Below, in pieces: positions 1,314 through 64,000 of a DNA stretch of 64,000 bases. Position 1 is the first letter of the stretch; each line of letters opens with the position of its first letter. The stretch covers positions 124,001 to 188,000 of IMG/VR virus record IMGVR_UViG_3300042868_007959. One strand, written 5' to 3'. The notes beneath the pieces are model-generated. The model was given only the letters and a program-made list of their open reading frames with translations. It made no database searches and was not told the DNA's origin. Made by a program: the position numbers and the translations under genes.

Positions 1314-2111
1314 TTATATGTTAAATATTCCACCCATATTATTCCTAATTTTTCTGATGGCACCCTCTTTTATTTGTCTGACTCTTTCTTTTGTAAGTCC
1401 TACCTCATCTCCTATCATTTCCAGTGTCATAGGTTCACCATTAATACCGTAATAACAATTAATTATCTCAATCTCTCTAGCGGATAAACCTCTAATTATT
1501 CGATTCATTTCTTTAGCTTTAAGATATTCTTCTTCCTCAGTGAAAATGTCTGGTCTTTTAAAGAAATTATCTTCTAATAGATTAATCATTTCTTCACCAT
1601 CCTCATTAATAGTCATATTATATGATATACAAATAGGTGTAGATATTTGTTCTACTTCATCATTTTGAGGATTTCTTTGGTTTTCTTTTTCAAAAGATTC
1701 TATTTGTTTCTTTATTTTAGATAGTTTATTTATAATATTACCTGGTAATCTAACAGTTCTAGAATTATCATTCAAAGATTGTAATATAGATTGTTTAATC
1801 CACCATATCGCATATGATATAAATCTGAAACCTTTAGTATGATCAAATCTTTTTGCTGCCGTAATTAATCCATAATTACCTTCAGAAATTAAATCTGCAA
1901 TTGGTAATCCTTGATTTTGGTATTCCTTAGCCACTTTAATAACAAATCTTAAATTTGCCTTAACTAATTGGTTTAGGGCATTTTGATCCCCATCTTTAAT
2001 TCTCTTTGCTAAACTAACTTCCTCATCTATTGTTAAGATATCTGTTTTTCTAACGTCTTTTAGGTATAGGTTTAATGAATCTTCTGTTAAGTCAATATAT
2101 TTATTTGTCAT
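1314..2111 (-). CDS. rpoD: RNA polymerase sigma-70 factor, RpoD/SigA family, Bacteroidota-like (no region 1.1)
   Basis: LYLKDV, LVKANLRFV, DLISEGNYGL, RFDHTKGFRFISYAIWWIKQSI, RTVRLP, and region 4 TLEMIG..GLTKERVRQIKE. Confidence 0.93.
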   Translation of the reverse strand: MTNKYIDLTEDSLNLYLKDVRKTDILTIDEEVSLAKRIKDGDQNALNQLVKANLRFVIKVAKEYQNQGLPIADLISEGNYGLITAAKRFDHTKGFRFISYAIWWIKQSILQSLNDNSRTVRLPGNIINKLSKIKKQIESFEKENQRNPQNDEVEQISTPICISYNMTINEDGEEMINLLEDNFFKRPDIFTEEEEYLKAKEMNRIIRGLSAREIEIINCYYGINGEPMTLEMIGDEVGLTKERVRQIKEGAIRKIRNNMGGIFNI

Positions 2112-2134
2112 AAGTAAACTTTGTTTTTTATTTG

Positions 2135-2602
2135 TTATTTATTTTTTATTTGATCCCTTAATTTTGCGGCAGTTTCGTAATCTTCTTTATCCAATGCTTC
2201 TTTTAATTCTTCTTCTATACTTTTTTCAGTAAAACCTTTAAAACCATAATCTGTAATCTCATCAAAAATCCCATTCTTAATGTTTTTTAAAGTCTCTTGT
2301 ATTTGTTCAAAGGGTAGTATATTAAGTTGTTTACCAAATAACGCCTCCTCAAAACTCTTATCTTCTAAATTCGCTGCGTAAAACCCAGGTGTCATCTCAA
2401 ATACAATATACGATTTCTTACCCATATCTAGTAACTCTTTTATCTCTAATAGATTGAAGCTACTTTTAAATGTGGCAATTATTAATCCTGATCCACTAAC
2501 AAAATTAACATTAGTTTCTGAAATAATAGTTAAATCCTCCTTTAACTCCTCTATACTATTGAGTCCTACAACACAATAAGTTTTTAAAAAATTTCTTTCC
2601 AT
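2135..2602 (-). CDS. Protein with C-terminal UVR (UvrB/UvrC) coiled-coil motif
   Basis: EEELKEALDKEDYETAAKLRDQIK. ATG at 2602 preferred over the TTG at 2626. Confidence 0.75.
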   Translation of the reverse strand: MERNFLKTYCVVGLNSIEELKEDLTIISETNVNFVSGSGLIIATFKSSFNLLEIKELLDMGKKSYIVFEMTPGFYAANLEDKSFEEALFGKQLNILPFEQIQETLKNIKNGIFDEITDYGFKGFTEKSIEEELKEALDKEDYETAAKLRDQIKNK

Positions 2603-2652
2603 ATCTACAACATTAAATATCAACAAAAATCATACACATTATTTTATAGTGA

Positions 2653-2683
2653 CAAATATAACAATTTCTATTTGATTTGCAAA
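2653..2683 (-). promoter_or_regulatory. Bacteroidota-type promoter (-33 TTTG / -7 TATATTTG)
   Basis: Minus strand TTTG-19 nt-TATATTTG upstream of the UVR and sigma genes. Confidence 0.7.
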
Positions 2684-33800: not shown

Positions 33801-34978
33801 TATTCACCAAAATTAAAGTTATTGTTTGTATTAGGTACTAAAAATTTTGCCCTCTGTCTCAACCTTTTATCGTTAGAAGTTGCATCCATAGATATTCTAA
33901 ATCTATAATCACCTTCTGTTGCAACACCTTTAATACCATCTGGAGATGGGACTAAATTACCAAATTCATCCGTTACTACTTTTCTAACATTCATTGGTAC
34001 TAATAATGACCAATTACCGTTTTCATCTACACCATTACCCTTAAAACTATATTTTTCTATTGCACCATCTACCGTTCTTCTAATTGCCTCTACATTACCA
34101 GGTCCTGTAATTACCTCGTTCATTTTACCCATTTCTCTAGTGGGTTTACAATTCTTATTTAAAGAATCTTTTTCATCATCCGAAAAAACACTACCCATAA
34201 AAATTGCGGTAGGAACTAGTTCTAAATTATCTATAGAAATATCGTACCTATTAATCCCTAATGCACTACCCACACTTAGACTATCACACCAATAAGGTTC
34301 TACCCTCACAGGAATGTTTTCTGAAAAAATTTGTGGTAAACTATCTAAATTATTTGAGGATTTGAATTTAAACCTATCTTTAAATAAGTCATCACTATAA
34401 CCTTGTTCAATCATTTCAAATGGTCGAACAGATAAGAACCCTATATCACTTACATCCATATCATAGTGTAAGAAATGATCACCAACTGGTACCCCAAATA
34501 AAATATAATCTCCCGCCTCATTGGTAGTCGTAGTATATTTATAATACTTTTCGTAAATTTCTAATGTCGTATTATTATCTAATACCTCTCTTTTTTTAGG
34601 AAATGTACCAACAGGTGTATGATCTAACTTTTGTTGGTTTTTTGGTAATACATTATATCTTATACCATTTCTATTTTTTTGATCAGGAAATGGTTCAGTA
34701 TATGGGTAAATTGCGGATTTTACTGGATCTGTTAAATCAGTTTCATCAACAGGTACAAATATAGAAACTCTTACATTTGGGACACCGAATCCGTTATTTA
34801 TTATAACTCTTCCAGCTATAACACCATATTCGGCACAAAAACTTTGGTAATCGTCTTTTTGTGATATTTTTAAACTTAATATTTCTAAATGATCATAATT
34901 TTGACTAAGATCAACATTAACCTTTAAATATCCATTTTCATTACCTGGTTTTGTCCTAATTCTATATGATTTAGACAT
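30878..34978 (-). CDS. Large virion protein with N-terminal carboxypeptidase-regulatory-like (prealbumin/Ig) domain and hydrophobic Cys-rich centre
   Basis: GVIAGRVIINNGFGVPNVRVSIF...TTTTNEAGDYILFGVPVG; LYSIICLLMTLFGHIVGFINGILNIINGLI followed by a Cys cluster. Confidence 0.65.
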   Translation of the reverse strand: MSKSYRIRTKPGNENGYLKVNVDLSQNYDHLEILSLKISQKDDYQSFCAEYGVIAGRVIINNGFGVPNVRVSIFVPVDETDLTDPVKSAIYPYTEPFPDQKNRNGIRYNVLPKNQQKLDHTPVGTFPKKREVLDNNTTLEIYEKYYKYTTTTNEAGDYILFGVPVGDHFLHYDMDVSDIGFLSVRPFEMIEQGYSDDLFKDRFKFKSSNNLDSLPQIFSENIPVRVEPYWCDSLSVGSALGINRYDISIDNLELVPTAIFMGSVFSDDEKDSLNKNCKPTREMGKMNEVITGPGNVEAIRRTVDGAIEKYSFKGNGVDENGNWSLLVPMNVRKVVTDEFGNLVPSPDGIKGVATEGDYRFRISMDATSNDKRLRQRAKFLVPNTNNNFNFGEYGSDDLKNSQDFTINKQLSTITTGTPYANDLRNQYNYLEEFYPFRWKKVYTVKQYIGRMQKLKNDEARGFIGIKDILNGEGVNKFPTNRIDVNLNPLYSIICLLMTLFGHIVGFINGILNIINGLITSVCSVKIPVGIGITLNYCINLPLNLELCNGNNCSEDCADSGGSFFSLSLIIKWRCIFSKLLCKKCKGICPASANHSCCPSSYASGCPSNDTIDVSASSGPPDNIPCCSKCCVKIPLIPLRCADEGTELRVTLFETPFGNQQGCNSAYVKPFSCKNCGGLQTPGIKDWVSCVMEPIAVFLRMLKFDFYNDWVGGVLYFPLIKRKFKLKKSKRKFGQIKKDKFCDFDCRESNNSVNFQGDPTFDQWRIKIPAILFSNPTISVNGCTAKIKGRRVTEWYGTEENDLQTPNLNLAVQELVFKGNTISFDGCTIKFNTFSDFQNAFNSQGIPYTIKDREIQGVHGKPEYVETDGGDGTTSWENIGGHGHHRNICDNTRMVERKEYFKNSLDCVTYSNSETFPDGSLPEDQNTFGPIDQPEGEEADANNDPNCPKPGCIPDCGSNGVAPCIYSQSEYDNYSKIIKHGLISWWDNEIYYTPYIPKGDVKFNNLEYKANLMLPTTIMELGSSVFCDIDDVPFIISSIPTTTFNVSYEEIKYKIGNETPYLDGSTKPILKFDDKKDLSLNLRAYIEFSCFNTVCTNIAATVNHSQIGVEMIDANDIGIEIGNCFLRFDHDADVRQYFCRRFNGFKTTNLNFHHIRPGSLEFDNTYQTYQPITLTDGTPLYYLLDGEYIRSEYNDGDSFIPGDACGYKNTNGTSDYFYGLAPGQTSTFINYPNGGQSLNFGQTSTGGIDLIDDEINGDVSIKGIKFNKSQTPYYLYFGLVPGKTALHKTVSQFFADKINATTLKGIGASNSNVEENINNSPNISNETQNNFTIYKTCLGETLIKKVEIGTPPVLTNNNFISFNGKGS

Positions 34979-49623: not shown

Positions 49624-52600
49624 TTAAGGTCCTGGATTAAAATAATTAATTAATGGTTCCCCATTTTTTTGTGTAAGGTTAGTTAAAACCTTTTCAAAAG
49701 TAATAAATGCATTTTCTATAGGTTTTGCATTATACTGATGAGATACCCCAATACATTTAGAATAAACGGTTGCAGAACCACTATCCAAACTAGAAAAATC
49801 ATATGCAGATTTATTATTATCTTTCAAATAATTCCACATTTTTATACTAGTTCCCATAGCAGCTACTTCTGTGTCGGATGCCACTTTAGGGTTAGTTTGC
49901 CCTAAATCTTTTAAAATATCTGTATATTGTTTCCTACCTATTACATATAAATAACCTCTAGGTTTGTATCTATATGCGTCACCTTCAAATATGTTATAGT
50001 ATTTAAGGGTTTTAATTAAATTACTTTCGTCTTTTAATAGTTTTGATAATTCTTTTTCTAATTTTTCTTTCTCAGTTTTTTCTGTGGCAATATTAATATC
50101 TAATTTAGGTAATCTTTCGTTAATTTCTTTTTTCCTATTTTCTATTTGATTGTTGATTGCGAATTCTTTTAAATCATCGTTACCTGGAATATTATATGAA
50201 ATATCATCTATACTTCCACCCGTAAAAATAGGTAGGGATAAAAGATAACCTTCAATATCTGGTGTACTTGTATTACCATAATATTTATTTTTACCTTTGT
50301 TTAATAAATCACTATTAGGGAATTGGTTTATGTATGTTTCTTTATTTTCTACACTCCATTCCATATCTTTATTTAATAAATTATTTGAATTGGATAATAT
50401 TGAAGATAAAAACATAGTTACTTGTGAATTTGTTTTTATGTTTGATCCTTGTAATAGTATTCTCGTATCATTTAGTAGTTTACCTAAAACTTCATCTGTA
50501 AATTGAGTGACCCCAATTCGTTTAAATTTATCAATTGATGTTGCATTATTACTTAGGTTATTTTCAAAATCAAATGCGTCTTTAGGGTTTAAAACACCAA
50601 TACTTAATAAACTATTTTTATTATTTAAATTAGTAAATTCTATTTTAGGTGTCTCACTACTTTCATTTAAATCGACATCTAAATCTGCAGTTATTTGTTT
50701 TGCTGGTGATGTAATATATCTAGATTGTCTTAATCCCTCAAAACTTGTAGACATTTGATTTGGTGTAATGTTATGGGTGACACTGGTGATTAAATAAGCC
50801 CCATTAAAGAATGGTACATTTTGTAAATCAAAATACATTAATGGTTGTATATTCATACAACCCATAGCCTCAACTTTGCAACTATAAGATCTAGTTTTAA
50901 ATAATTTTAATAAATCTGTCCCTACATATGACTTTTGAGTTCCACCTCTTTTATCAACTAAATCCGATATCGCTTTGAAATATTCTCCAGTCTCTCTATG
51001 TTCTTGTTGACTTAATGATACATTCTTAAAAACTGTTTGGTTTTGTGCACCAAAGGATACTCTAAATGCCACTAAAGACGATTCGTCTAGATTAATATCA
51101 CCATTTTGAGCTACCGCATCGGAAGTGGAATTTGGATCAACTAAATCTGTAGGTAAATTTCCCGTAGTCAATGAAAATCCGTCATCTTTAAAGTAGTAAT
51201 TACTCCTTTCACCAATATCTAAAGACTGAGATGCCCCACCAACATAAATACAACAAAATATCGGACCCGATGACTCATTTCTTTCTAATACTGTCTGTGG
51301 TTGAAATATCTTTGCAACTTCTTTCGCACTTTTAAAATTTATATATGTCGGTAATATCTGAAATAAAAAGTTACTATCCCTTAATAGTTTTGATATGAAG
51401 AAATATACACTAGTATTTAAATTACTCCCTAAAGTAAGAAAACTTTTTAAGTTAAAAGTCGCTTCATCACCAATGAATCTCCAACCCCTATCTATAAATT
51501 TAAAATACTCAAATAAATTTTTATCTGCTGAATCACCACATATACTAAATGAACCATCATTCCCAATCCATTTATTACTTATATTTTTAAAATAATTATA
51601 TAATTGTAACTTTATGATATTAGTACTTTTATTATCATTTTTTATCTCTTTATTTTCTTCAGTACCATTAACATTTTCTTTACCTACCTCGTTGAATTTT
51701 TTTCTAAAATTAGTAACATAATTTAAAAGAATCGATTTATCTACAACTAATCCCTTTTTAGTTTTATTCTGATCAATTTTAGTTTTATCAAAAATATCGG
51801 GATTTAATAAAATTAAATCTGTTGTTTCTATTATTTTTTGAAAGATAAAAGATTTTGCGTTCTTTTTTTCTTCTTTTGTTAATGTAGGTTCTGTTATAAT
51901 ATCTGGAATATATAATTTCATATTCCTCTCAAAAGTGCCATTTTTTGTAGAATTAAAATTATCACTATCTACCCAATTTTTAAATTTATTAATAAGGGTA
52001 TCTTTAACAGATTTAGGTAAATATATTAACTCATCTTCCAATAACTCATTATCAATTTTATCCAATGTTTTATTATCTTTTATTAATTTATATCCAATTT
52101 TATTTAGGTAACAATTAGATGGAGTACTAAATAGACTATAATTTTTTTGTGGTGTTGTTGGAAATGTTAGAGGATCAGCATTAGTTATTGATTCTTCATA
52201 TCTCCATAATAAAGCACCGATATAATAAACATAAAATTTAGGTAAGTTTATTATTCTAGCACCATCTTTTACTGTGGAATCAAAAACTGATTGTATAAAA
52301 CCTTCTTTAAAGTTTCTAAATGGAAAAGTAGATAATAATAATAATGCTCTAGAATAGTTAGATGCTTGTATATCATATAAATCTGAATATGTTAATACAT
52401 CTTCATAATCAGTAGAACTATTAGAAGCGTTTTTAAAATATGTTCTATTAAGATACGTACTGTTATATGTAGTACCACTAGGATTTATATCCTCTAATGT
52501 GGACTTGTTTAAATTTCCTAATATTTCATTATTACTAGATTTTAATATATTATTACATATATCTTTATACCAAACATTATACGAATTATATGTGGTAAAA

Positions 52601-55314
52601 TTGTTAGCACCTGAATAAAAGTTTTTGTAGAACAAAGGTCCTTTTGATTCTTTTACAGGTGGGCTAGATTTAGGATCAACCAATTTTCTGTAAGATTCGT
52701 CATCTCTTATTTCTTGAAATAATTTTTTACTATTACCTATTATTCCAGTATCATCGAATAAAATATAATCTACTTTATCTGAGAATGTTCCACTTATGGG
52801 AAAATTTCCTATTTTTTGAAACTGATTTTCTTCATTAATTGTGTAGAAATTATTATCTTCTATTATAAAATCTTTATAAAAATTAGATTTTTTAAGGTTA
52901 AATTTTTCACTATCTACTACTGGTGTATTAGGATTATTTAATTGATTTTCTATATCGATTAAAATATTTGATATTAGTAACCTAGCTTTTTCAGAAAAAA
53001 TTGTTTTATTAGCAGCAATAGATTCTAATCTAGCGTATCCATCGACATCCTTTATACCACTACTTGGAGAAAATCTACTATAATTTATTAATAATGCTAA
53101 CCTAGTAAAGAACTTTTCTACTAATTCATTACCCATTGATTGTACGTCATTGATTGAGTTAAGCCTAATCCAAGGATTAATTTTATAATCTATAGGGTTA
53201 ATCGGGAACCAGTTATCTGTATCTAAACCATTTTTTAATACACTTGCCTTAGTTACATCTTCAAGTGATTTTGTTTTACCAACTAAATTTTCAAAAACTC
53301 TTTCTACAAAATCCCACTCTGGAAAATCTGAACTATTTATCGTCAATACTTCACCAATATAAATTTCTTCTAAATCACCTTTATCGTTTTTTTGGTATAT
53401 AGAAGGCCAAGCTACACCATCAATACCTGTAGGGACATCTGTTTCATATGTTTGTAAAATAGATTGTCTATTAGTAGATTTTGATTTATCTTCCGCACTA
53501 ACACTTATATCATAAACAGTTTCAACCATTGCTTGAGTATTATTAGCGATAATTTCAAAACATTTACCAATAGTAGGATCGAACTGAACATTTAAACTTT
53601 CTCTGAAATTCTTCAAAAGTTTTTCATTTAATTCTATCTGAACTATTTCTTTCTGAATTTTAATTATCTCTTCTAAGTCTTTAATACTATCCTCAACCAA
53701 TGCCCTCTGTTTTCTAAAGTCCGCTACTAAAACATTTGAGGTTTCTAATAAATTTGTTGTAGGTGAATAAAAGTTTTTACCCTCAACTTGTTTTATAAAT
53801 TGTTGTATACTGAAATTAGTATTTATTTCAGGTCCTTTTTCATAACTAGGTTTTAATAGGTATATTGGTGAATTAGGTGTATAAAAATCGAATAATACAG
53901 ATATTAAAGTAATTGGTTCTGGTTTTAGGTTATCATTCTTTGTTGGGAAGACAATATAATTTTCCCAACTATTTTCGTCCGACCCATTATCAGTAAAAGA
54001 TTTAATTAAATCATTATCTTTAGGTGATATAATTGTTTCATTTTCTTTTATCTTTTGAGTTTTTAAAATGTCTTTTAATTTTGCACTCTCTAAAGTATTA
54101 TCAGGTTTAAATTTTACCCTTTGATCCGATTTAAGATACTCTTGATATTTTAAAATTATTGTATTAAGTGTTGAAATGAATGATTTAAATGAAGCCCTAT
54201 TTATAGAATTAAATACTATGTAGTCTCTAATAGATAAACAATTTTTATTAATAATTATTTCATCATCTTTAATTGCGGACGATTGGATTACATCATTTCT
54301 ATTTTCTAACTCTAAATAAGATTTAGTCTCTACATTTTTTTGATCACTCCCTTCACCTGATTTTTTAGGTTGTTTTGGTAATGGTGCACCAATAAAAGAT
54401 TTTATAGTTTTTAATAAAGTTAATTTACCATTTAAATCTTTTAGTAATTGGAAACTATTAAGATCGGTTTTAATAATTTCGGACTCTACTTGTAACTTAC
54501 TTATCTGAGTAAAGAAATCATCTATTTTTCTAATATCTAAATCACCTGTTTTTCTTAAATCATCTAAGGTTTTACCTTTAAGATTTGGTGAGGTTATTTG
54601 GGTATTACTATTTTCAAATATTTTATTCAGTTTATTATAACCTTCTGGTGTATTAACAACTCCAATAATATTACCTAAAACCATGTCATTTAAGAAGGCT
54701 TGTTGAAACCCTAAAAAATTTGCACTTATTTCAAAATTACCTGTAGAACCATCAAAATTAGATGTCCAATTAGTCATATGTAAACAAAAATCTACTTTTT
54801 GACCAAAGTAACCTTTTATAGATAAGTTAAATACAGGATATGGCATTTTAAAAAATATACTATACGGTGATAATCTTTCATCATCCTTTATAACATCAAA
54901 TAATGCCCCACCTCTAACATCTGTAAATGTTATGTCTACTGTTGGGACTAAACTAGAGTTATATTTAATATCTATAGATTTTATACCAAAACCTTCTAAT
55001 GCTCCCGCACTTCTACCGTCACTACCATTAAAACCACCTATGTTTGACCAATCAGTTGTCGCATATGATTTTTGTAACGCAGGATCTAATTTACCTGTTG
55101 TGTTATTATATTTTAAATTTGTAGATATGAAATGAACTTCATCTTCTATTCCTGAATTAAAATTTTTATTTTGACCTCCATATGTAACTCTACTTCTAGG
55201 GTATGCAGAAAATTTAACATATATGAATAAATCTTCAGGTGGAATTATTGACGTACCTGGTGGGTTTGGGTCAACAATAAACGCCTTACCAATCTTTTCT
55301 ACTTTTGGATCCAT
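49624..55314 (-). CDS. Baseplate hub (gp27/gpD-like) protein with C-terminal degenerate GH19-like domain
   Basis: FGIKSIDI..VDITFTDVRG; CKVEAMG..IQP..YF...FNGAYLITSVTHNI; GDAYRYKPRGYLYVIGRKQY. Confidence 0.75.
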   Translation of the reverse strand: MDPKVEKIGKAFIVDPNPPGTSIIPPEDLFIYVKFSAYPRSRVTYGGQNKNFNSGIEDEVHFISTNLKYNNTTGKLDPALQKSYATTDWSNIGGFNGSDGRSAGALEGFGIKSIDIKYNSSLVPTVDITFTDVRGGALFDVIKDDERLSPYSIFFKMPYPVFNLSIKGYFGQKVDFCLHMTNWTSNFDGSTGNFEISANFLGFQQAFLNDMVLGNIIGVVNTPEGYNKLNKIFENSNTQITSPNLKGKTLDDLRKTGDLDIRKIDDFFTQISKLQVESEIIKTDLNSFQLLKDLNGKLTLLKTIKSFIGAPLPKQPKKSGEGSDQKNVETKSYLELENRNDVIQSSAIKDDEIIINKNCLSIRDYIVFNSINRASFKSFISTLNTIILKYQEYLKSDQRVKFKPDNTLESAKLKDILKTQKIKENETIISPKDNDLIKSFTDNGSDENSWENYIVFPTKNDNLKPEPITLISVLFDFYTPNSPIYLLKPSYEKGPEINTNFSIQQFIKQVEGKNFYSPTTNLLETSNVLVADFRKQRALVEDSIKDLEEIIKIQKEIVQIELNEKLLKNFRESLNVQFDPTIGKCFEIIANNTQAMVETVYDISVSAEDKSKSTNRQSILQTYETDVPTGIDGVAWPSIYQKNDKGDLEEIYIGEVLTINSSDFPEWDFVERVFENLVGKTKSLEDVTKASVLKNGLDTDNWFPINPIDYKINPWIRLNSINDVQSMGNELVEKFFTRLALLINYSRFSPSSGIKDVDGYARLESIAANKTIFSEKARLLISNILIDIENQLNNPNTPVVDSEKFNLKKSNFYKDFIIEDNNFYTINEENQFQKIGNFPISGTFSDKVDYILFDDTGIIGNSKKLFQEIRDDESYRKLVDPKSSPPVKESKGPLFYKNFYSGANNFTTYNSYNVWYKDICNNILKSSNNEILGNLNKSTLEDINPSGTTYNSTYLNRTYFKNASNSSTDYEDVLTYSDLYDIQASNYSRALLLLSTFPFRNFKEGFIQSVFDSTVKDGARIINLPKFYVYYIGALLWRYEESITNADPLTFPTTPQKNYSLFSTPSNCYLNKIGYKLIKDNKTLDKIDNELLEDELIYLPKSVKDTLINKFKNWVDSDNFNSTKNGTFERNMKLYIPDIITEPTLTKEEKKNAKSFIFQKIIETTDLILLNPDIFDKTKIDQNKTKKGLVVDKSILLNYVTNFRKKFNEVGKENVNGTEENKEIKNDNKSTNIIKLQLYNYFKNISNKWIGNDGSFSICGDSADKNLFEYFKFIDRGWRFIGDEATFNLKSFLTLGSNLNTSVYFFISKLLRDSNFLFQILPTYINFKSAKEVAKIFQPQTVLERNESSGPIFCCIYVGGASQSLDIGERSNYYFKDDGFSLTTGNLPTDLVDPNSTSDAVAQNGDINLDESSLVAFRVSFGAQNQTVFKNVSLSQQEHRETGEYFKAISDLVDKRGGTQKSYVGTDLLKLFKTRSYSCKVEAMGCMNIQPLMYFDLQNVPFFNGAYLITSVTHNITPNQMSTSFEGLRQSRYITSPAKQITADLDVDLNESSETPKIEFTNLNNKNSLLSIGVLNPKDAFDFENNLSNNATSIDKFKRIGVTQFTDEVLGKLLNDTRILLQGSNIKTNSQVTMFLSSILSNSNNLLNKDMEWSVENKETYINQFPNSDLLNKGKNKYYGNTSTPDIEGYLLSLPIFTGGSIDDISYNIPGNDDLKEFAINNQIENRKKEINERLPKLDINIATEKTEKEKLEKELSKLLKDESNLIKTLKYYNIFEGDAYRYKPRGYLYVIGRKQYTDILKDLGQTNPKVASDTEVAAMGTSIKMWNYLKDNNKSAYDFSSLDSGSATVYSKCIGVSHQYNAKPIENAFITFEKVLTNLTQKNGEPLINYFNPGP

Positions 55315-55652: not shown

Positions 55653-58600
55653 TTAAGTTAAACCATTTTCAGTGATAGTAAATGTTTTATTTACTGTAGT
55701 TGTTTTTTTATTCTTAGAAAGATATGCGGTTACTTCAACTGAAGAGGATACACTACCCTCATATTTTTTTAATTCTTTCTCTTTATCATTAAAATCGTTT
55801 TCTGCTTTTTTTAATTGTGCGTTAGTAATTGTATTATCACCATTTACTTTTTGAGTTTTTAAAACAATATAGGCTGCCAATGCATCTTCAACTGCCTTTT
55901 TTTTCACCGTTAATGTTTCAAAATTAACTATCTTACCCTTAAATTTTGGATTTTCTTCTGAACAATCTATGTCAAATGAGGTTGCAGTATTAAGAGATGT
56001 ACCATCATCTGAAGACTTACCTACTTTTACTTTCACTACTATTGAATTGTCTGGCGATTTTTCACCATCGATTTCAATATCAGATGCTGCTTTACCGTCT
56101 TTTGTTTTCACCACTATTTTACTTGGTTTTTCTACCGATATATCTAAAACACCTGTATTTTCACTACCTTTACCGTTATCAGAATTTTCATTATCTTTAG
56201 TTTGATTAACAATACCTTCTTTTTTAAGACTATTTATATACTTGTTAAGATTTTCTTCACCAACCAATTGTTTTTTAAGTTCTCCTAATTTTATACCGTC
56301 AATAACTTTTCCTGTATTATAATCTACTTTATCTGATCTTACATCATACATTTCTGTATTTGCGTAATAATTAAATGATACTGCATTTTGTAATCTATTA
56401 AGTGGTCCAACTAATGAATGTCCACCTATATAATCAATACCTAATGATACTGTCGCAATCATAGGTTGGACACCGATGCCTTCAGGATTTAAATCCCATT
56501 GTGGTCCATCATATGTTATAGATAAACTATTAATTGCTACTTTAGTATGGAAAAAATCCCCAATCCTTAATATACATATAGGAGGTCTACCAAATGATAA
56601 ATTTTGTGGTTGTACACCTACTTCTGTACCATCTTTTTGGGTTACCCTATCATAAATACTTGGACCTTGCCTCATACACTGATTTAAAAACGTCAACCTA
56701 CTATTGAATCCTTCAGGTGTAATACTATGAAATCCAGCATGAAAATATTTTATTTTTTCTGAAATATATTTAAAATAATTTGGGTAATTTTCATCTATAA
56801 AGTCAAAATATGTCCCTTCATCTATAATTAGATTATCAATTAGTCTAATATCTTCTGGAATAGTGAAAGAACCATCGTCTTTTTCTTCCTCTTTTGGTTG
56901 GGAATCTTTAGAATTTTTTGTATCATTTTCCATTACTACATCAACTCTATATGAATTAGTATCCTCAGTAGATAATGATGAATTACCTTTAGATTCAATA
57001 GGACTTATATTAGATATTAATTTTGGATCAATGCCTGAAGATTTTAATCTACTATCAATTTCCGATTTTACTATATCCGCAAATTCTTTACTTAATTTTG
57101 TTCCGTCATCACCTGTTGGGGTACCGAAACTATCTACAGTAGCCCCTACTCCAACCCAACCATTTAATGTTATTTTTACTTTAGGGTTAGTATTACCACT
57201 TTGTTTTTCAACAAATTCTTTTATTAATGTTACTATGGAAGTTAAATCAGTTTCAGAAGGAGTTCTTTTAGCTTTACAATTTTCAGTGGATGAGTCACAA
57301 TTAACATCTTGTTCAAAAATTACTCTACCATCTTTCTTTGAACTTTCAACATCAACTTTTTTTTGTGGTTCTTTTTCTTTAATTTTCTTTTTTATTTCTT
57401 CTAAATCACTTTGAGGTACAGAACATTCTAATGCCCTTAAAAATTCATCTGGTGTAGCACAACCCGCAAAAAATCTTTCGGTTAAATTAGTACTATTTCC
57501 CCTATAACAATTAATAACTCTAGGGTGGTCAACAATTATTTTAAAACTTAATGATCCTGATCTACTTGAATTATTATATGTATATACTGGTTCACTTCTA
57601 CCGATAAAATCAGTTTTGTTCCAATTTGCGGAAGTATTCTCATCAAAAGTTAATTCATATGGAGGAAACCACATTATTCTTCCTTTGTTACCACTTAATA
57701 AATCACCAGGTCCAATTTCACTTAATGGTAAATCTGCCAAATTATCTGTCCAAGCCAAATTTTCTATGGATAACATAAATTTTTTACGTGTGGTACTTGA
57801 GTCTAATATAGAGGGGTGAATTTTCGGAATACCATTACTCATCAATACACTTTGAGATGCCTGATTATTTGACACTGAAAATCCTTGTAAGTCTATACTA
57901 GGTGAACTAAATAATCCAGTATTTCTTATAGCGTTTGCGTAACTATATCTATCGTTAACTGTCCATACTCTACAGAAATTACCATTTCCATCTATATCTA
58001 TTAAATCAAGTGTTTTAATTGCGTTACCTCTACTTATTACCCTATTTTGTTCTTTATCTTTAAAATATTTTTTAGTCTGATTTATAAAAACATCATTCTG
58101 AAAATCATTAACTAATTGTTGAGTTTTATATAATAATGTCTTCTCATTGAAATTTTGTTCCCCACCTGTTGTCCAGAAAAATTTATTATCTTCACCGAAA
58201 GGTTCACCGATACCCTCAACTGTAGTCCTTTTAGCGTTACCTGAAGTATCCACCGCACCATTAAAATCGGCACTTGTAAATTTTTTAGTTATTAAACTAC
58301 CTCTATTAGTATTTTTTTCCGTACCAACATAATATCTTGAATTTAAACCTGCGTCAGATGTACCCGCCAACCTTCTATCTTCATATAACGGTCTATAATC
58401 ATTTCTATTCATTAGATTAAATGCAAATGAAACTTGTGTCGAACTAGTTCTACTCAATAATGTATTCATTCTTATTTCAGTAGACAGAGTTGGTTCTACA
58501 CCTTCTTGTATATCTAAATCTGATTTTATTAATTCTGATCCTGATTTCGCACTACTATTGTACTCATTCCACCCAACTGCGTTATTGGGTAATGTGTTGA

Positions 58601-59258
58601 AGAATTGATCACTACCTCTTAGTTTATTAACATAATTGTCAACAATGTTCCCAATAGGTTCAGTTATAAATCCAGTTTTTTTATTGGAGTTACCTGTTTC
58701 TTCAGAAATTTGTGATATTTTATTTAAAATTGTTTTTTCTAATTCTTGTCCACCTATTAAACCTAATGAACTTTCTCTTTGGAAATTTAATGATTTATAT
58801 GTGTCAATAACATTAAAAGGAAATTTTACACCTTTTTGATCACCTTTATTAATTAGAAAAAATTGTTCTTGATTATAAAATGATGGGTAGTCATCTCTTA
58901 CTTTTTCACCAAATCCTTCAGGTAGTGGATATCCTAATTTAGGTGGATATGAAAATTCAAAAACTTCATATACATCATCTTGTGGTATATATCTATTAAA
59001 ATTAACATTTTGTGTTGTTCTATATAAATTACCTAATGGGAATAATCTTTTATTTACATCATAATGAACTGGAATATTTTCATTGGCTTCACCATTTACT
59101 GGTACACTTATAACTGTTCCAATATCCTGTAATTTAGAAACTAATCCTGATTGTGTTAATGTTTCATTAACTGGTAAAGGTAAATTTCTATTTAATAGAC
59201 TATTTCTAAATCCTTGTGTAGAATAGATACCTTTATTATAATCTAATATTCCTGCCAT
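55653..59258 (-). CDS. Tail-tube-fold baseplate/tube initiator protein with inserted OmpA-like remnant
   Basis: WNKTDFIGRSEPVYTYNNSSRSGSLSF and PPICILRIGDFF...SLSITYD..WDL...PMIATV. Late motif at 59279-59286. Confidence 0.7.
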   Translation of the reverse strand: MAGILDYNKGIYSTQGFRNSLLNRNLPLPVNETLTQSGLVSKLQDIGTVISVPVNGEANENIPVHYDVNKRLFPLGNLYRTTQNVNFNRYIPQDDVYEVFEFSYPPKLGYPLPEGFGEKVRDDYPSFYNQEQFFLINKGDQKGVKFPFNVIDTYKSLNFQRESSLGLIGGQELEKTILNKISQISEETGNSNKKTGFITEPIGNIVDNYVNKLRGSDQFFNTLPNNAVGWNEYNSSAKSGSELIKSDLDIQEGVEPTLSTEIRMNTLLSRTSSTQVSFAFNLMNRNDYRPLYEDRRLAGTSDAGLNSRYYVGTEKNTNRGSLITKKFTSADFNGAVDTSGNAKRTTVEGIGEPFGEDNKFFWTTGGEQNFNEKTLLYKTQQLVNDFQNDVFINQTKKYFKDKEQNRVISRGNAIKTLDLIDIDGNGNFCRVWTVNDRYSYANAIRNTGLFSSPSIDLQGFSVSNNQASQSVLMSNGIPKIHPSILDSSTTRKKFMLSIENLAWTDNLADLPLSEIGPGDLLSGNKGRIMWFPPYELTFDENTSANWNKTDFIGRSEPVYTYNNSSRSGSLSFKIIVDHPRVINCYRGNSTNLTERFFAGCATPDEFLRALECSVPQSDLEEIKKKIKEKEPQKKVDVESSKKDGRVIFEQDVNCDSSTENCKAKRTPSETDLTSIVTLIKEFVEKQSGNTNPKVKITLNGWVGVGATVDSFGTPTGDDGTKLSKEFADIVKSEIDSRLKSSGIDPKLISNISPIESKGNSSLSTEDTNSYRVDVVMENDTKNSKDSQPKEEEKDDGSFTIPEDIRLIDNLIIDEGTYFDFIDENYPNYFKYISEKIKYFHAGFHSITPEGFNSRLTFLNQCMRQGPSIYDRVTQKDGTEVGVQPQNLSFGRPPICILRIGDFFHTKVAINSLSITYDGPQWDLNPEGIGVQPMIATVSLGIDYIGGHSLVGPLNRLQNAVSFNYYANTEMYDVRSDKVDYNTGKVIDGIKLGELKKQLVGEENLNKYINSLKKEGIVNQTKDNENSDNGKGSENTGVLDISVEKPSKIVVKTKDGKAASDIEIDGEKSPDNSIVVKVKVGKSSDDGTSLNTATSFDIDCSEENPKFKGKIVNFETLTVKKKAVEDALAAYIVLKTQKVNGDNTITNAQLKKAENDFNDKEKELKKYEGSVSSSVEVTAYLSKNKKTTTVNKTFTITENGLT

Positions 59259-59444: not shown

Positions 59445-61415
59445 TTATCCCATATAGTCACTTGCCTCTTTACTTGATGGAACTCCACCATTTCTAAATG
59501 TACCGTTTAAGTGAGAAATTATAGTTTTTATAATATCAGGTTTAATAGATTCTATATCCATATTTTTAGTAGAACCATCAGGTGAAACTATTTCTATTCT
59601 CCCTGAAACATCTAATGTCCCAAACTCAATTTTGGAAGGTATCGTACCACTATTACCACCTGATGATAGATTTTTATCCATTAATTTATCTAAAGGTCCA
59701 CCTCTTTTAGCTCCGATAATATCATCTTCATTAGTGAAGCTAGTTACTTCACCAGAAGACCTCATCATAAAATCCTCACGAACAATTGGATCTCCAGGTT
59801 TTTTTATCACATCTTCCCCACCCATTTTCTTTAACTCTGTTAATATATCTTCTAAAGAAGTTTTTAAGTCAAGTTCTTTTAATGCATCCTTTAAACCCTT
59901 AGTAAAGTCAGCATCAAATACCTTTTGAATTCCTTCACCAGTAGTAATACCTAGTAATTGTGCCTGTTCTAACATAGCTTCCCTAAGTTTACCATAAGGT
60001 GTTGTTTGGAGATATTCTATTGTCTTCTGAATTTGTTTTTCAGTACCTTCCATAAGTGAATCCATACCTGGTCTTAATATGTCCTCAGTCAATTCATAAA
60101 CATTTGTTTCTGCCACATACCCTGTTTTCATAGCTTCTAAAATGTTCTGTAGAATTTGGTTGGTAGTCATTGAATTTTTAGCCATATCCATTATCGCCTC
60201 TTCTTCATTTTTAGGTGCTGCCAACATTTTTTCTGCCATATCAACACCAATCTCATCTATACCTATTTCTTTACCATCAAAATCGACTACCCATTTACCA
60301 TCTTTCATTTTAGCCATACTAGCTAAACCTTCTCTCATATCTTCATCAACGATATTGCCAGAAACATTCATTTTGATGTCTTTTATTTTTGCGGATTGTC
60401 TAGCCATATCAATAAGACTTTCAGCACTACCACCAATCGTTTTTGATAAAGCCTCAAATTGTTGTCTAGCTTCTGGAGGTAATTCATATTCACCAGATTC
60501 TTCGTTAAACTGTAACATGTTTTCAGTCATTTTACCAACCTTCTCAGCCAACTCTTGAGGTTTGTTTCTTGCTAAATACATAGTTTCGAAAGGATCACCA
60601 AACGCTTCTGCAATATCACCACCTAAAAGTTGTAATTCTGCTGCTGCCTCTATTGCCCCCTCAGGATTGTAAAATTTATCTGCCATAGATAACATATCAC
60701 TGACATCCATTCTCATCTTAACTGCCAATTTAGACATCTCCATCATTCCTTTGACACCACCTTTAAATGAATAAGATGACATTTTATCAAAATTATTTGC
60801 CAATGTCTTAGCTACTTGACTAGCATTTAAACCTAATTTTTGACTATCTACAGTTAATTTATTTAAAAATTGTGAGGAGTTTTGAACACTGACACCCATC
60901 AAATCCATTCTTTCAGCTAATGCTGATGCACTCTCAATTCCTACCCCTAATCCCTTTTCTAAAAGAAAGATATTCTTAACTTCTTCTGGTGAGATAATTC
61001 TAGCCCTACCATTTGCATCAGAAAACTTTGTCATTATAGTATTAACATTTTCCGCAGTACCCCCAAATTTTTGAACTTCCGCAGTCGCCCTATTAAATGA
61101 TTTAGTAAATTCGTGACTTCTACCTACTGATATACCAATGTTTACCGCAGTTGACTTACTTGTTTCCGCCAATTTTTCGGCATACTTATATTGTTCTTTA
61201 CTATCTGTTGCAAATTTTCTAAATTCAGAAGATATATTTCTTACAGATAAAACCGCATCTTCTAATAAATTTTTACTATCTCCTATATTTTTACTTACAC
61301 CCTCAGAATCCTTATTAATCTTAGCCATATTACCAGACATTTCATCTAGTTTTTCATTTAACTCATTAATTTGTTTTTGTAACTTTTTTATATCGTCTTC
61401 AGTAGGTGCTGCCAT
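59445..61415 (-). CDS. Tape-measure-like protein
   Basis: Helical, A/M/K-rich; EGAIEAAAELQLLGG. Located between the tail chaperone and baseplate genes. Confidence 0.75.
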   Translation of the reverse strand: MAAPTEDDIKKLQKQINELNEKLDEMSGNMAKINKDSEGVSKNIGDSKNLLEDAVLSVRNISSEFRKFATDSKEQYKYAEKLAETSKSTAVNIGISVGRSHEFTKSFNRATAEVQKFGGTAENVNTIMTKFSDANGRARIISPEEVKNIFLLEKGLGVGIESASALAERMDLMGVSVQNSSQFLNKLTVDSQKLGLNASQVAKTLANNFDKMSSYSFKGGVKGMMEMSKLAVKMRMDVSDMLSMADKFYNPEGAIEAAAELQLLGGDIAEAFGDPFETMYLARNKPQELAEKVGKMTENMLQFNEESGEYELPPEARQQFEALSKTIGGSAESLIDMARQSAKIKDIKMNVSGNIVDEDMREGLASMAKMKDGKWVVDFDGKEIGIDEIGVDMAEKMLAAPKNEEEAIMDMAKNSMTTNQILQNILEAMKTGYVAETNVYELTEDILRPGMDSLMEGTEKQIQKTIEYLQTTPYGKLREAMLEQAQLLGITTGEGIQKVFDADFTKGLKDALKELDLKTSLEDILTELKKMGGEDVIKKPGDPIVREDFMMRSSGEVTSFTNEDDIIGAKRGGPLDKLMDKNLSSGGNSGTIPSKIEFGTLDVSGRIEIVSPDGSTKNMDIESIKPDIIKTIISHLNGTFRNGGVPSSKEASDYMG

Positions 61416-61434: not shown

Positions 61435-61587
61435 TTAAGGTGTTTTTTTATTTTCTTCAAAGTCTTTTTTTATTTTTTCAAAATCTTTTTTTATTTTATC
61501 AAAAATTTTTAATATCTCACTAAATTCTGTTTTATTCACAGAATTATTTACAATTTTTTTTATATTATTAGTTAAATCACCTAACAT
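61435..61587 (-). CDS. Small hypothetical protein, 50 aa (not in track)
   Basis: MLGDLTNNIKKIVNNSVNKTEFSEILKIFDKIKKDFEKIKKDFEENKKTP*. Starts 1 nt after the upstream stop. Confidence 0.6.
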   Translation of the reverse strand: MLGDLTNNIKKIVNNSVNKTEFSEILKIFDKIKKDFEKIKKDFEENKKTP

Positions 61588-61588
61588 A

Positions 61589-62086
61589 TTATCTTTTTTC
61601 AATTATCTCAAAAGATACTTTTTCTTTTAAACTACTTCTTGTTTTTACCGCTGAACTGACAAACCCATCTTGACTGTAAAATAATTGGATGTCCCCTTCT
61701 TGAGATAAACTTGTCCGTAATGTCCTATAATTTAATATCAAACCGACTCTATAATCCCAATCATCTTTTTGTAGAATTATATAACTATCTGTAACAGATA
61801 AAACATTAAATCTATTTCTCCCATAAAATTCGAATTCTAGCTTTTCAACTGCCGCACGTAAAGACAATTTTATTTTATCTATAAAAGATATACTTATTTC
61901 AGTAAAAGGCAGTGATTTTTGGGTATTTTGTTGATCTAATCTACTTTGAATACGAGCATTTAACATATCCATCTTCTCTTTAGTCTTATCAATACTATAC
62001 TGAACATCTTGTATATCTTGAGTGGAAATACTTTCTATTAGAATATTTATATCTTCTATAGTTTTTAAATACTTATTTATATCCAT
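61589..62086 (-). CDS. Hypothetical protein
   Basis: 165 aa. Late motif at 62102-62109. Confidence 0.7.
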   Translation of the reverse strand: MDINKYLKTIEDINILIESISTQDIQDVQYSIDKTKEKMDMLNARIQSRLDQQNTQKSLPFTEISISFIDKIKLSLRAAVEKLEFEFYGRNRFNVLSVTDSYIILQKDDWDYRVGLILNYRTLRTSLSQEGDIQLFYSQDGFVSSAVKTRSSLKEKVSFEIIEKR

Positions 62087-62122: not shown

Positions 62123-62266
62123 TTATTCTTTTGGTATTAGATAATCTATATAATATTTACGCATATAAGTTGGCATAATCAGAATATCTGAATATGAAAA
62201 ACCTCTATTAACTAAAAATAATATCTCCCTAAGAAGATATTGTTGATGGTTAGATGTCAGGCCAAA
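62123..62266 (-). CDS. Tail assembly chaperone C-terminal extension (+1 frame ORF, probably reached by frameshift)
   Basis: FGLTSNHQQYLLREILFLVNRGFSYSDILIMPTYMRKYY overlaps the 3' end of the upstream gene. Confidence 0.65.
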   Translation of the reverse strand, partial: FGLTSNHQQYLLREILFLVNRGFSYSDILIMPTYMRKYYIDYLIPKE

Positions 62267-63026
62267 ATAAATTTTTATTGATTCTAAGAAAGGTATTAAC
62301 GGACTCTCCCCCCTGAGTCCTAGCAATGACATTAAAATTAATTCCTGGCTCAATCTCTAACAAATACTTATTAAGATTTCTAATATCCATGATAGGTAAC
62401 GCTTTTAAAATATTGGATATTTTAATCTTATCTCTTTCACCGTCTATATCCATTATCGATCTTTCTAATCTTAAAGTTGTTTTAGTAGAAATTTCATTTT
62501 TAGACCTTTCCATAATTTGTTGATCTAAAATTTCTATTTCTTCCTCATCTTTACCTGTCAATAATCTAAATTTTAAATTTTTATTTGATTTAGGAAGAAT
62601 GAAATCAAATAACCCATTTTCGTCTGGTTTAACAGTTAATTTTTTTTGTTCTAAAGTAGATAAATCAACCTCCCCTTCTACCACCTTTTTAGAAAAAGGA
62701 TCAATAATAGGTTGTATATATTTTTCACCAAATGCAGAAACTCTTAAGAAAATAATTATTGCCATTCTATCACCTTCCAAAAGTAACTTATGATCAAATC
62801 CTAAATCTTTAACTTTTCTTTCTAATAAAACATCTATAAGTTTCCCACTAGCCAATATATTTGGTGATGTCAATATGTTCTCATCAAAAGCAGTTAAGTA
62901 TTCTACTTTAATTTTATCTTTTTTATTTGGGTATAATAAACCTTGTGAAGGTAATTCTATTATATCGTAAGGTACCTTATAATCTTCAGGTACAAAGTTT
63001 GGGTCATTAAAGCTATTTTTATCCAT
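62250..63026 (-). CDS. Tail assembly chaperone / T4 gp26-like protein
   Basis: IELPSQGLLY, LTAFDENIL, GDRMAI..LR..AFG..Y, LPKS..LKFRLLT, EPGI, FWP. Confidence 0.8.
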   Translation of the reverse strand: MDKNSFNDPNFVPEDYKVPYDIIELPSQGLLYPNKKDKIKVEYLTAFDENILTSPNILASGKLIDVLLERKVKDLGFDHKLLLEGDRMAIIIFLRVSAFGEKYIQPIIDPFSKKVVEGEVDLSTLEQKKLTVKPDENGLFDFILPKSNKNLKFRLLTGKDEEEIEILDQQIMERSKNEISTKTTLRLERSIMDIDGERDKIKISNILKALPIMDIRNLNKYLLEIEPGINFNVIARTQGGESVNTFLRINKNLFWPDI

Positions 63027-63062: not shown

Positions 63063-63980
63063 TTATACTATTTCTATTGGTTCAACAAGAACTTCTATTT
63101 TACCAAACATTTTATCTAATTCATTTTGATCGATAACTTTATTGGTATCTACATCATCATCAAAATCGTCTGGATCTACAATTATACCACCTTCTGATCC
63201 TGCATCAACTTCTCTTTTCTTATTCCAATACTCTGAACAAGTTTGATCTAATTTATTTTCTAAATCTACTAATTTCCCAACAGATAAAGGTTTCCCATCT
63301 ACACTTGTTTTAGGTAAAAATCCCGCTATTAATTCGTCAACTGTTGGGACTTTGGGGAATGCACCACCGACCAATGGGGTATTTCTTAAAAAATCACTTA
63401 TGTCTTTGAACCATTCATTATCTCTTTCTTTACCTTTAAATTGTTCATTAGTTTCTTTTTCAAAATTTTGTAAAGATTCCTTTAAGTATTTTATACGCTC
63501 TCTTAATTTTGTAGATTTACCTTCTTTATCATTACAAAAATCTTCAATTTCTTTTTGATTCCATGAGGCAATATTTACTATATTATTATATTCTACACTA
63601 AATTCTTCTAATGCCGTCATATATTCATCTTTTTTATTAAAAAAAGCGTCTACTTTTTGGTTACATTCACTTATACAACTATTAGTATTAGCATTACCAT
63701 AACCGAATTTACTTTCACATTTTGATCTACATCTAGCGTAACCAATTTTCCTTAAATTTTCTAAATCTCTTTTAACAGATTTCAGTGGTTCTACTACTAA
63801 AAATCCTAAAGGATGATACTTCCATAGTTTACTATTACCATAATCGGCACCTGCAGTCATTATTAAGGATTCTGAATCAGGTAAACTACCTCTTTGGGTT
63901 GATACATAAATTTCATTTAAACTAATTAAAGCGACTTGTTCTACCACAATTATTCTAAGGACATCTTCTATATTTTTCAT
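63063..63980 (-). CDS. Hypothetical helical protein with Cys pairs
   Basis: 305 aa; CRSKC..CISEC; leader ending ISLNE. Confidence 0.7.
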   Translation of the reverse strand: MKNIEDVLRIIVVEQVALISLNEIYVSTQRGSLPDSESLIMTAGADYGNSKLWKYHPLGFLVVEPLKSVKRDLENLRKIGYARCRSKCESKFGYGNANTNSCISECNQKVDAFFNKKDEYMTALEEFSVEYNNIVNIASWNQKEIEDFCNDKEGKSTKLRERIKYLKESLQNFEKETNEQFKGKERDNEWFKDISDFLRNTPLVGGAFPKVPTVDELIAGFLPKTSVDGKPLSVGKLVDLENKLDQTCSEYWNKKREVDAGSEGGIIVDPDDFDDDVDTNKVIDQNELDKMFGKIEVLVEPIEIV

Positions 63981-64000
63981 TCTTTTACCTGACCAACCTT

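Follow-up and report, generated by a model that had tools for sequence, protein, structure and literature searches.

A probable conserved +1 frameshift in a tail-assembly chaperone gene related to T4 genes 26 and 51 in a large freshwater phage

Gene organization at the locus

The region examined lies within a 64,000-nucleotide stretch of virus record IMGVR_UViG_3300042868_007959 (positions 124,001 to 188,000; hereafter the window), and all of the features described below are on the minus strand. ORF1 (63026..62250) encodes a 258-aa protein ending in NKNLFWPDI, with the terminal codons AAA AAT TTA TTT TGG CCT GAC ATC TAA (stop codon at 62252..62250). In the +1 frame the sequence reads TTT GGC CTG ACA (FGLTSNHQQ...) and continues for 47 codons to a TAA at 62125..62123, whereas the -1 frame reads TTG GCC TGA and closes at once. 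Gene callers leave 164 nt uncalled after ORF1. Downstream are two small genes of unknown function (61435..62086; 165 aa, 62086..61589, and about 50-55 aa, 61602..61435) and a 656-aa gene (59445..61415), which is a candidate tape measure gene on the basis of its position only. In relatives including Mel-JY01, immuto, HSE3, LIS04 and SP-15, the ORF1 homolog follows the sheath and tube genes and precedes a gene annotated as tape measure; in the window's own genome, however, neither the 656-aa gene nor the 720-aa gene upstream of ORF1 gave a family match.

It was originally predicted that the ORF1 frame is linked to the +1 frame by a slip of tRNA-Phe on TTT-T (62267..62264) and that the +1 frame has no nearby ATG, with an ATG at 62353 offered as a possible independent start. 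The comparative data described below support the proposed slip, but two of the details require correction. The +1 frame is open for 34 codons upstream of the ORF1 stop and contains an in-frame ATG at 62332..62330, 22 codons before the junction, and the codon at 62353..62351 is TTG rather than ATG. Neither codon can serve as the start, since in the relative designated L003, whose ORF1 protein is 100% identical, and in other close relatives GTTAAT is replaced by GTAAAT, placing a +1-frame TAA between these codons and the junction.

An inverted repeat, GGACTC-AGGGGGGA-GAGTCC (62301..62320), which is predicted to pair as a 6-bp stem around a G6, Shine-Dalgarno-like loop, has its 3′ end 33 nt upstream of the slip codon. 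It is nearly invariant at the nucleotide level in the related loci L003-L011, and although distant homologs also have a G-rich stretch here, it encodes conserved Gly-Glu-Glu. Initiation at an ATA behind the G-rich stretch was rejected because the ATA is not conserved.

Conservation of the out-of-frame arrangement

The same arrangement recurs in 118 related loci (31-100% identity) from uncultured and cultured phages, the latter including phages of Microcystis, Flavobacterium, Bacillus, Listeria, Streptococcus, Ralstonia and Pseudomonas. In these loci the gene stops 1-8 codons after a conserved Phe-Phe-x-Pro, and a conserved extension of 45-100 residues follows in the +1 frame in 111 loci, in the -1 frame in seven, and in frame in none. 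A broken gene, whether through mutation, pseudogene formation or a homopolymer sequencing error in an originally continuous gp51-like gene, might be considered because homopolymer runs are error-prone and the extension is homologous to the in-frame C-terminus of gp51. This is very unlikely, however, given that the arrangement is found in 118 independent loci, including finished genomes of cultured, viable phages, that no in-frame version was found in this clade, and that both parts remain under purifying selection. In the window's clade the extension has a pN/pS of 0.21 in the +1 frame, against 2.1 and 3.9 in the other two frames, with variable sites by codon position of 12/10/35.

Stops in the two frames confine the shift to about TTY TTT TGG CCT, the +1-frame stop lying as close as 11 nt before the Pro codon and the 0-frame stop as close as one codon after it. 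The commonest motifs are TTT TTT TGG CCT (52), ..CCA (11) and TTA TTT TGG CCT (10), the last being that of the window (62259..62270). The site is TTT_T in 77 of 86 distinct relatives, and Phe codons at the site are TTT:TTC 155:6 compared with 674:134 elsewhere in the same genes (p 3.6e-6). All seven -1 loci instead carry an in-phase X_XXY_YYZ heptamer at the same Phe-Phe (T_TTT_TTT, T_TTT_TTC or A_AAT_TTC), whereas the +1 loci have TTT_T, TTT_C or CTT_T. A -2 shift, which would enter the same frame as +1, or a shift at another codon of the overlap such as the A-rich AAT AAA AAT (AATAAAAAT lies just upstream in the window), appears unlikely. The A-rich stretch varies among close relatives (AAAAAC, AAGAAT) and is absent from distant ones, in 14 loci the +1-frame stop excludes everything upstream of the Phe-Phe codons, and -2 re-pairing from TTT onto TAT in the window would produce a mismatch.

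In 45 of 84 distinct +1 loci the extension frame has no ATG, GTG or TTG before the junction, and 72 of 84 have no ATG. Expression of the extension as an independent small protein, from a non-canonical codon or by termination-reinitiation after ORF1, is therefore improbable, although LR756511 has an ATG overlapping the ORF1 stop (TAATG), small ORFs have been annotated inside the extension in HSE3, SP-15 and Mel-JY01, and clusters in the Atlas resembling the extension are 40-59 aa "hypothetical proteins", which may simply be gene-caller fragments. Conservation begins at the junction residues (GLTxEY), which lie upstream of the ORF1 stop, there is no conserved Shine-Dalgarno sequence (AGGGAG in the window is AAAGAA in close relatives), and the -1 loci carry canonical heptamers. 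Additionally, in T4 gp51 the same domain is covalently part of the protein.

Proposed recoding mechanism

In the absence of protein, ribosome-profiling or reporter evidence, the comparative data most likely reflect a programmed ribosomal frameshift. It is proposed that most ribosomes terminate at the TAA at 62252..62250, producing the 258-aa short form, and that a fraction shift +1 when tRNA-Phe occupies the P site on UUU (62267..62265) with the Trp codon UGG in the A site, the tRNA re-pairing with UUU one base downstream (62266..62264). GGC would then be read next, and 46 codons (GLTSNHQQ...YLIPKE; 62123..62263 together with the stop) would be added to residue F254 to give a 300-aa long form with a helical C-terminal domain and the junction NKNLF|GLTSNHQQ (predicted junction peptide NLFGLTSNHQQYLLR). 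UGG is not a classical "hungry" or stop codon, and no stimulatory element was identified: the whole-region fold has a z of -0.67, and the 50 nt downstream across 82 loci are only weakly more structured than a control (mean z -0.87 against -0.29), while the upstream G-rich hairpin is 33 nt away and overlaps the conserved Gly-Glu-Glu codons. Logan contigs of four runs gave zero depth over 62228..62268 and are uninformative about the site, although one contig from an RNA library covers 62292..62594.

Transcriptional slippage, in which RNA polymerase drops one U in the T run (or adds one in the -1 variants), could give the same product without ribosomal shifting. Most relatives have a run of seven Ts (TTT TTT T), the -1 variants L105, L028 and RsoM2USA have eight or nine, and run length and frame co-vary as expected for one or two extra Ts relative to a continuous frame. 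This explanation is nevertheless considered unlikely, as the window's clade has a run of only four Ts (TTATTTTGG), others have CTTT or TTC TTT T, and L013, HSE3 and GXN1 have TTT_C with no run, while L038 and L070 use A_AAT_TTC and PA5oct uses T_TTT_TTC. These sequences are poor slippage templates but good ribosomal shift sites.

Relationship to T4 gp26 and gp51

"Tail chaperone", as the product was originally described, is right in spirit but needs refining: profile and transitive evidence, rather than a direct hit, places ORF1 in the T4 gp26/gp51 "baseplate hub assembly chaperone" family (PF12322, phrog_150). ORF1 itself gives no PF12322 hit at E<=1, but a close relative that is 82% identical (P0021) scores 24.7 bits against a cut-off of 24.5, and HSE3 and LR756508, members of the same alignment family, score 80.5 and 55.9 bits. 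ORF1 matches phrog_150 with E 6.7e-5, and when the extension is fused this becomes 9.7e-6 and the alignment extends from profile position 214 to 265. The fused family aligns with the gp51 family collinearly across the junction (hhalign E 6.2e-5), and the extension alone aligns to gp51 residues 204-246 (E 0.006, compared with 0.33 for the reversed control). These profile links are modest, a BLASTP comparison of the fused product with T4 gp51 was not significant, direct comparison of the fused family with the gp26 family was likewise not significant (E 0.11), and tblastn of the extension alone against phage records gave no match. Among 32 homologous extensions, three are hit by phrog_634, "baseplate hub assembly catalyst" (best E 7e-6), and an Atlas neighbour cluster carries PF28602 Gp51_C (score 0.90). 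Sub-threshold hits to DUF6760 (PF20546) in five of 32 extensions remain only a lead, with none detected in five phage genomes and no literature found.

T4 gp26 aligns to gp51 residues 10-203 (hhalign E 1e-19), ending where the gp51 C-terminal domain begins and within 3 residues of the position equivalent to the junction, whereas gp51 continues with a helical domain homologous to the extension. T4 has two PF12322 genes and the frameshift-type phages have one; in the window's own genome record no PF12322 hit was obtained, and an alignment-based search found only ORF1. The single recoded gene thus corresponds to the T4 pair gp26 and gp51, which in T4 come from two diverged paralogous genes with no recoding. 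T4 gene 26 also has an annotated internal-start product, 26′, and the T4 proteins keep Cys pairs (zinc-ribbon-like) that the window's protein lacks. T4 gp51 lies upstream of genes 27-28-29, gene 29 encoding the tape measure.

ORF1 is predicted to fold with a pLDDT of 89. The three best structural matches of its N-terminal domain (model residues 3-108), each covering most of the target, are the uncharacterised 3fgx (Z 6.5), the HK97 tail assembly chaperone 2ob9 and Bacillus subtilis YqbN 3klu (both Z 5.6), the last of which is probably a chaperone of the XkdN type. This resemblance is weak, as such Z scores are in a range that may reflect a common arrangement, and a Foldseek search of the PDB with the ORF1 model found nothing significant. 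A search with a model of a natural gp51 homolog returned generic helix-loop-helix matches to residues 205-250, which filled the list and left its N-terminal domain untested.

Comparison with other recoded genes

Lambda gpG/gpGT and the conserved tail-assembly-chaperone frameshift of long-tailed phages (Levin 1993; Xu, Hendrix, Duda 2004, 2013, 2014, as summarised in PMC5009743) similarly involve two overlapping frames just upstream of the tape measure gene (in the window a candidate by position only), a slippery site near the end of the first frame, a second frame with no start of its own, and a short and a C-terminally extended product from one gene (inferred here). In contrast, the shift described here is +1 in 111 of 118 loci, mostly at UUU_U, rather than -1 at a heptamer, and the protein is twice the size of gpG (258 aa against about 140) and belongs to a different sequence family (PF12322), with an extra beta-rich C-terminal half. 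By analogy with lambda, the shared N-terminal part would hold the tape measure protein and the extension would recruit or organise the tube or hub, with both forms acting in a fixed ratio set by the shift efficiency and neither staying in the virion.

In the bacterial release factor 2 gene (prfB; CUU_UGA_C) a P-site tRNA slips +1 from YUU onto UUU, as is inferred here, with CUU_U occurring in some relatives of the window's gene (immuto, L091) and UUU_U being a known minor prfB variant, and in both cases the next codon starts UG and is followed by C. However, the A-site codon is sense UGG rather than the stop UGA, there is no Shine-Dalgarno element 3 nt upstream, and there is no autoregulatory logic. 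Other +1 shifts yielding C-terminally extended structural or assembly proteins in tailed viruses, namely tsh and cps of Listeria phages PSA, A118 and A500 and the probable +1 tail chaperone of haloarchaeal myovirus HSTV-2 (PMC5009743), use CCC_UGA or CCC_U proline sites, partly with a pseudoknot, and involve different gene families.

Implications for T4-related phages

Frameshift-linked chaperone pairs are a hallmark of long-tailed phages, to which T4 has been the textbook exception (PMC5009743). This locus and its 117 relatives represent a large, unannotated clade of T4 gp26/gp51 homologs probably recoded at one conserved site, mostly +1 at UUU_U, a shift type that is rare in bacteria and phages, and no paper describing this was found in the library searched. 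The extension has been either missed or called as a separate hypothetical gene in many phage genomes, including the cultured phages PA5oct, SP-15, LIS04, HSE3, immuto and Mel-JY01, but can be recognized by a simple signature, FF(W)P followed by a stop within 1-8 codons and then an out-of-frame GLTxEY...MP..LR..Y. The clade also supplies a natural series of +1 and -1 sites at the same codon pair for mechanistic work.

A broader possibility, about as likely as not, is that PF12322 proteins are the tail (hub and tape measure) assembly chaperones of T4-like and many jumbo myoviruses, homologous in logic and perhaps in fold to lambda gpG/gpGT. The ancestral state would be one gene giving a short and a long form by recoding at a Phe-Phe site, kept across phages of at least five bacterial phyla and having switched between +1 and -1, although a tree of gp26, gp51 and the frameshift-type genes, which resolved three clean groups, is unrooted and cannot order the duplication relative to the recoding. 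T4 would have replaced recoding with a duplication into gp26 (short form) and gp51 (long form), which would explain both the long-noted absence of G-T frameshifting in T4 and the obscure "catalytic" role of gp51. The relationship provides a testable functional assignment for T4 gp26 and gp51 as the short and long chaperone forms.

Genomic context of the recoded gene

All relevant genes lie on the minus strand, where ORF1 (63026..62250), encoding a 258-aa protein, ends AAA AAT TTA TTT TGG CCT GAC ATC TAA. The +1 frame reads TTT GGC CTG ACA and so on and remains open to the TAA at 62125..62123, a total of 47 codons counted from the Phe, in agreement with the original prediction, whereas the -1 frame closes at once (TTG GCC TGA). 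The +1 frame is also open for 34 codons upstream of the ORF1 stop and contains a TTG at 62353 and an ATG at 62332, such that the original statement that no ATG lies nearby was not exact, and the codon at 62353 that had been described as an ATG is a TTG.

Downstream of ORF1 are a 165-aa gene, a gene of about 50 aa, a 656-aa gene that is a tape measure candidate by position only, a 1201-aa gene and a gp25-like wedge gene. The 1201-aa ORF (55653-59258, minus strand), which has no PHROG or Pfam match, is one of four very long ORFs in the structural region, the others being of 2756 aa (17903-26173), 1896 aa (49624-55314) and 1366 aa (30878-34978), also on the minus strand. The gene directly upstream of the chaperone (1802-3964 of the sequence L096, with its 3′ part at 63063-63998 of the window and the remainder beyond the window end at 64000) encodes 720 aa and has no Pfam or PHROG match, although relatives have a tail tube gene at this position; the 213-aa and 612-aa genes before it are likewise unmatched. 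The window is bases 124001-188000 of a 253,879-bp virus record, estimated to be 78% complete. It carries UvsX-like, DnaB-like, ribonucleotide reductase and gp6-like wedge genes, and near-identical DNA occurs in lake-water metagenomes. A 303-nt contig from a freshwater metatranscriptome library matches ORF1 (62292-62594) with 5 differences, which shows presence in an RNA library but is not proof of transcription. Read data were uninformative at the shift site itself.

Conservation of the out-of-frame extension

Relatives were collected from four sources, comprising IMG/VR contigs, 9 close and 80 distant, at 31-100% protein identity; GenBank phage records, namely Microcystis Mel-JY01, Flavobacterium immuto, Bacillus HSE3 and SP-15, Listeria LIS04, Streptococcus GXN1, Ralstonia RsoM2USA, Pseudomonas PA5oct, and two uncultured megaphages; and 19 contigs from metagenome-assembled genomes (MAGs). 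Of the 118 loci that could be analyzed, ORF1 stops 1-8 codons after a conserved [FL]-F-[WFRYHS]-P in every one apart from LR756511, where the 0-frame tail is longer. A conserved 45-100 residue peptide follows out of frame, with the consensus FGLTxEY..I..EIF.L...G.GGF....VYNMP..LR.FY, and is found in the +1 frame in 111 loci, in the -1 frame in 7, and in frame 0 in none. The arrangement is conserved far beyond chance. Cultured phages that carry the same recoded gene, namely PA5oct (locus L124; 2450-3304 and downstream), RsoM2USA (locus L123) and the phages of loci L120, L121, L122, L014, L001 and L002, have only the short ORF annotated ("baseplate hub"), with either nothing or a separate hypothetical gene for the extension.

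Location and direction of the shift

The nucleotide motif is TTT TTT TGG CCT in 52 loci of the first set, ..CCA in 11, and TTA TTT TGG CCT in the window's clade. In 14 loci the +1 frame is closed by a stop only 11 nt before the Pro codon, and in two loci (L001, from Mel-JY01, and L042) the 0-frame stop follows the Pro codon by one codon, such that the change of frame is confined to roughly GT TTY TTT TGG CCT NNN. The codon before TGG plus the next base is TTT_T in 77 of 86 distinct genes, and in the remainder, which have TTT_C, CTT_T, TTC_T and similar, a TTT_T or TTT_C one codon earlier can serve. Phe codons at the site are TTT 155 to TTC 6, compared with a ratio of 674 to 134 elsewhere in the same genes (Fisher p 3.6e-6), although the loci are not phylogenetically independent and this p value is indicative only.

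Several lines of evidence indicate that the extension is not a separate gene. In 45 of 84 distinct +1 loci there is no ATG, GTG or TTG in the extension frame between its upstream stop and eight codons past the junction, and 72 of 84 have no ATG. The relative L003, which encodes an ORF1 protein 100% identical to that of the window, has GTAAAT where the window has GTTAAT, which places a TAA in the +1 frame after the window's ATG 62332. Gene callers leave 164 nt empty after ORF1. In the window's clade the extension has a pN/pS of 0.21 in its own frame, against 2.1 and 3.9 in the other two frames, and its variable sites by codon position number 12, 10 and 35. Furthermore, conservation starts at the junction residues, which lie upstream of the ORF1 stop.

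The direction of the shift and the motif go together. Each of the seven -1 loci has a canonical, in-phase X_XXY_YYZ heptamer at the same Phe-Phe, namely GAT TTT TTT (locus L028), GGT TTT TTT (locus L105), GTT TTT TTT (RsoM2USA), GGT TTT TTC (LR756511), AGT TTT TTC (PA5oct) and xxA AAT TTC (loci L038 and L070), whereas the +1 loci, which include the Firmicute, cyanobacterial and Flavobacterium phages, lack such heptamers. This co-variation is what ribosomal frameshifting predicts and is hard to reconcile with sequencing error, a pseudogene or independent initiation. Transcriptional slippage remains possible for the relatives with runs of seven to nine T residues, but is unlikely for the window, which has a run of only four, and for the sites without a run.

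Relationship to T4 gp26 and gp51

ORF1 matches phrog_150, "baseplate hub" (E 6.7e-5), and when the extension is fused the alignment extends from profile position 214 to 265 and the score rises from 23.4 to 26.2 bits. T4 gp26 and T4 gp51 both belong to PF12322. The window's ORF1 does not reach that model, although an 82%-identical relative does (24.7 bits against a cut-off of 24.5), and HSE3 and LR756508 match both the ORF1 alignment (E 9e-41 and 3.5e-84) and PF12322 (80.5 and 55.9 bits). Alignment by hhalign of 62 fused sequences against 90 gp51 homologs gives E 6.2e-5 and aligns residues 59-295 with gp51 41-243, straight through the junction, whereas ORF1 alone gives E 5.9e-4. The extension alone aligns to gp51 204-246 with E 0.006, and its reversed control gives E 0.33. 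The profile phrog_634, "baseplate hub assembly catalyst", which covers gp51 147-246, hits three of 32 extension peptides (best E 7.1e-6). Homologs of gp51 carry PF12322 plus PF28602, while gp26 homologs carry PF12322 only; the Atlas names PF28602 "Gp51_C" and lists such a cluster among the look-alikes of the window's extension. Sub-threshold matches to Pfam DUF6760 (PF20546; 16-17 bits against a cut-off of 27, best E 1.7e-4) were also detected over the same part of the profile in 5 of 32 extension peptides, including those of loci L034, L083 and L089; five phage genomes gave no hit and no literature was found, and the domain may also exist as a free-standing small protein elsewhere.

The gp26 family aligns with the gp51 family at E 1e-19 (gp26 11-208 to gp51 10-203), so that gp26 ends (...EFFELL) exactly where the gp51 C-terminal domain starts (...VFKLL|VNPDEIF...). 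In the fused-family alignment the junction F|G falls on gp51 F200|K201, and the short form (F-WPDI-stop) and gp26 therefore end within a residue of each other, while the long form matches gp51. T4 has two PF12322 genes, whereas Mel-JY01, immuto, HSE3, LR756508 and the window's record have one each. A tree separates the frameshift-type genes from gp26 plus gp51 with full support, although with three groups and no outgroup it cannot order the events. The T4 record (L012, 7803-8429) also annotates an internal-start product, 26′ (the C-terminal 95 aa of gp26), besides gp26, so that T4 also makes two products from gene 26, by a different route. Both gp26 and gp51 have been listed as hub assembly chaperones, with gp51 absent from the particle (Leiman et al., PMC3004832), and gp26 is named a "baseplate hub assembly chaperone" by NCBI. 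G-T frameshifting has been stated to be conserved in long-tailed phages "except T4" (Atkins et al., PMC5009743).

Predicted structure

ORF1 is predicted to fold with high confidence (pLDDT 89.1, pTM 0.83). Foldseek found nothing significant, whereas an exhaustive alignment gave three top matches, all over model residues 3-108 and most of each target, namely 3fgx (Z 6.5), the HK97 tail assembly chaperone 2ob9 (Z 5.6) and Bacillus subtilis YqbN 3klu (Z 5.6), the last of which is probably the XkdN-type chaperone of PBSX-like prophages. The Z values are modest, and these matches are considered supportive rather than decisive. The gp51-like model (pLDDT 90.8) shows the C-terminal domain as a helical hairpin (residues 205-250).

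Proposed mechanism and implications

The mechanism that best accounts for these observations is P-site slippage of tRNA-Phe from UUU to the overlapping UUU (or UUC) while UGG awaits decoding. This is related to the YUU_U slip of prfB (PMC5009743), but with a sense codon in the A site and no adjacent Shine-Dalgarno element. No convincing stimulator was found. An inverted repeat, GGACTC-AGGGGGGA-GAGTCC (62320..62301, minus strand), with an 8-nt, G6-containing Shine-Dalgarno-like loop, is nearly invariant at the nucleotide level in relatives of 78-100% protein identity although neighbouring third positions vary, but its 3′ end lies 33 nt upstream of the slip codon and it overlaps conserved Gly-Glu codons; distant homologs also have a GGAGG-like stretch here, but it encodes conserved Gly-Glu-Glu. 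A 9-bp AU-rich hairpin is predicted about 25 nt downstream of the slip site (62220-62241, minus strand), although across 82 loci the 50 nt after the site are only slightly more structured than a control (mean z -0.87 against -0.29). The efficiency of the shift, the need for both forms and their binding partners are inferred by analogy with lambda G/GT.

The out-of-frame arrangement is confirmed, and its original interpretation as a probable +1 programmed frameshift in a tail chaperone is supported by sequence comparison, from which a ribosomal shift at UUU_U is inferred. It resembles the chaperone frameshift of the G/GT type, but is +1 at UUU_U, occurs in a gene linked by profile evidence to the gp26/gp51 family, is conserved across a very wide range of phages, and has apparently not been annotated, or described in the literature searched. 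Its main interest is that it connects T4 gp26 and gp51 to the general chaperone-frameshift paradigm.
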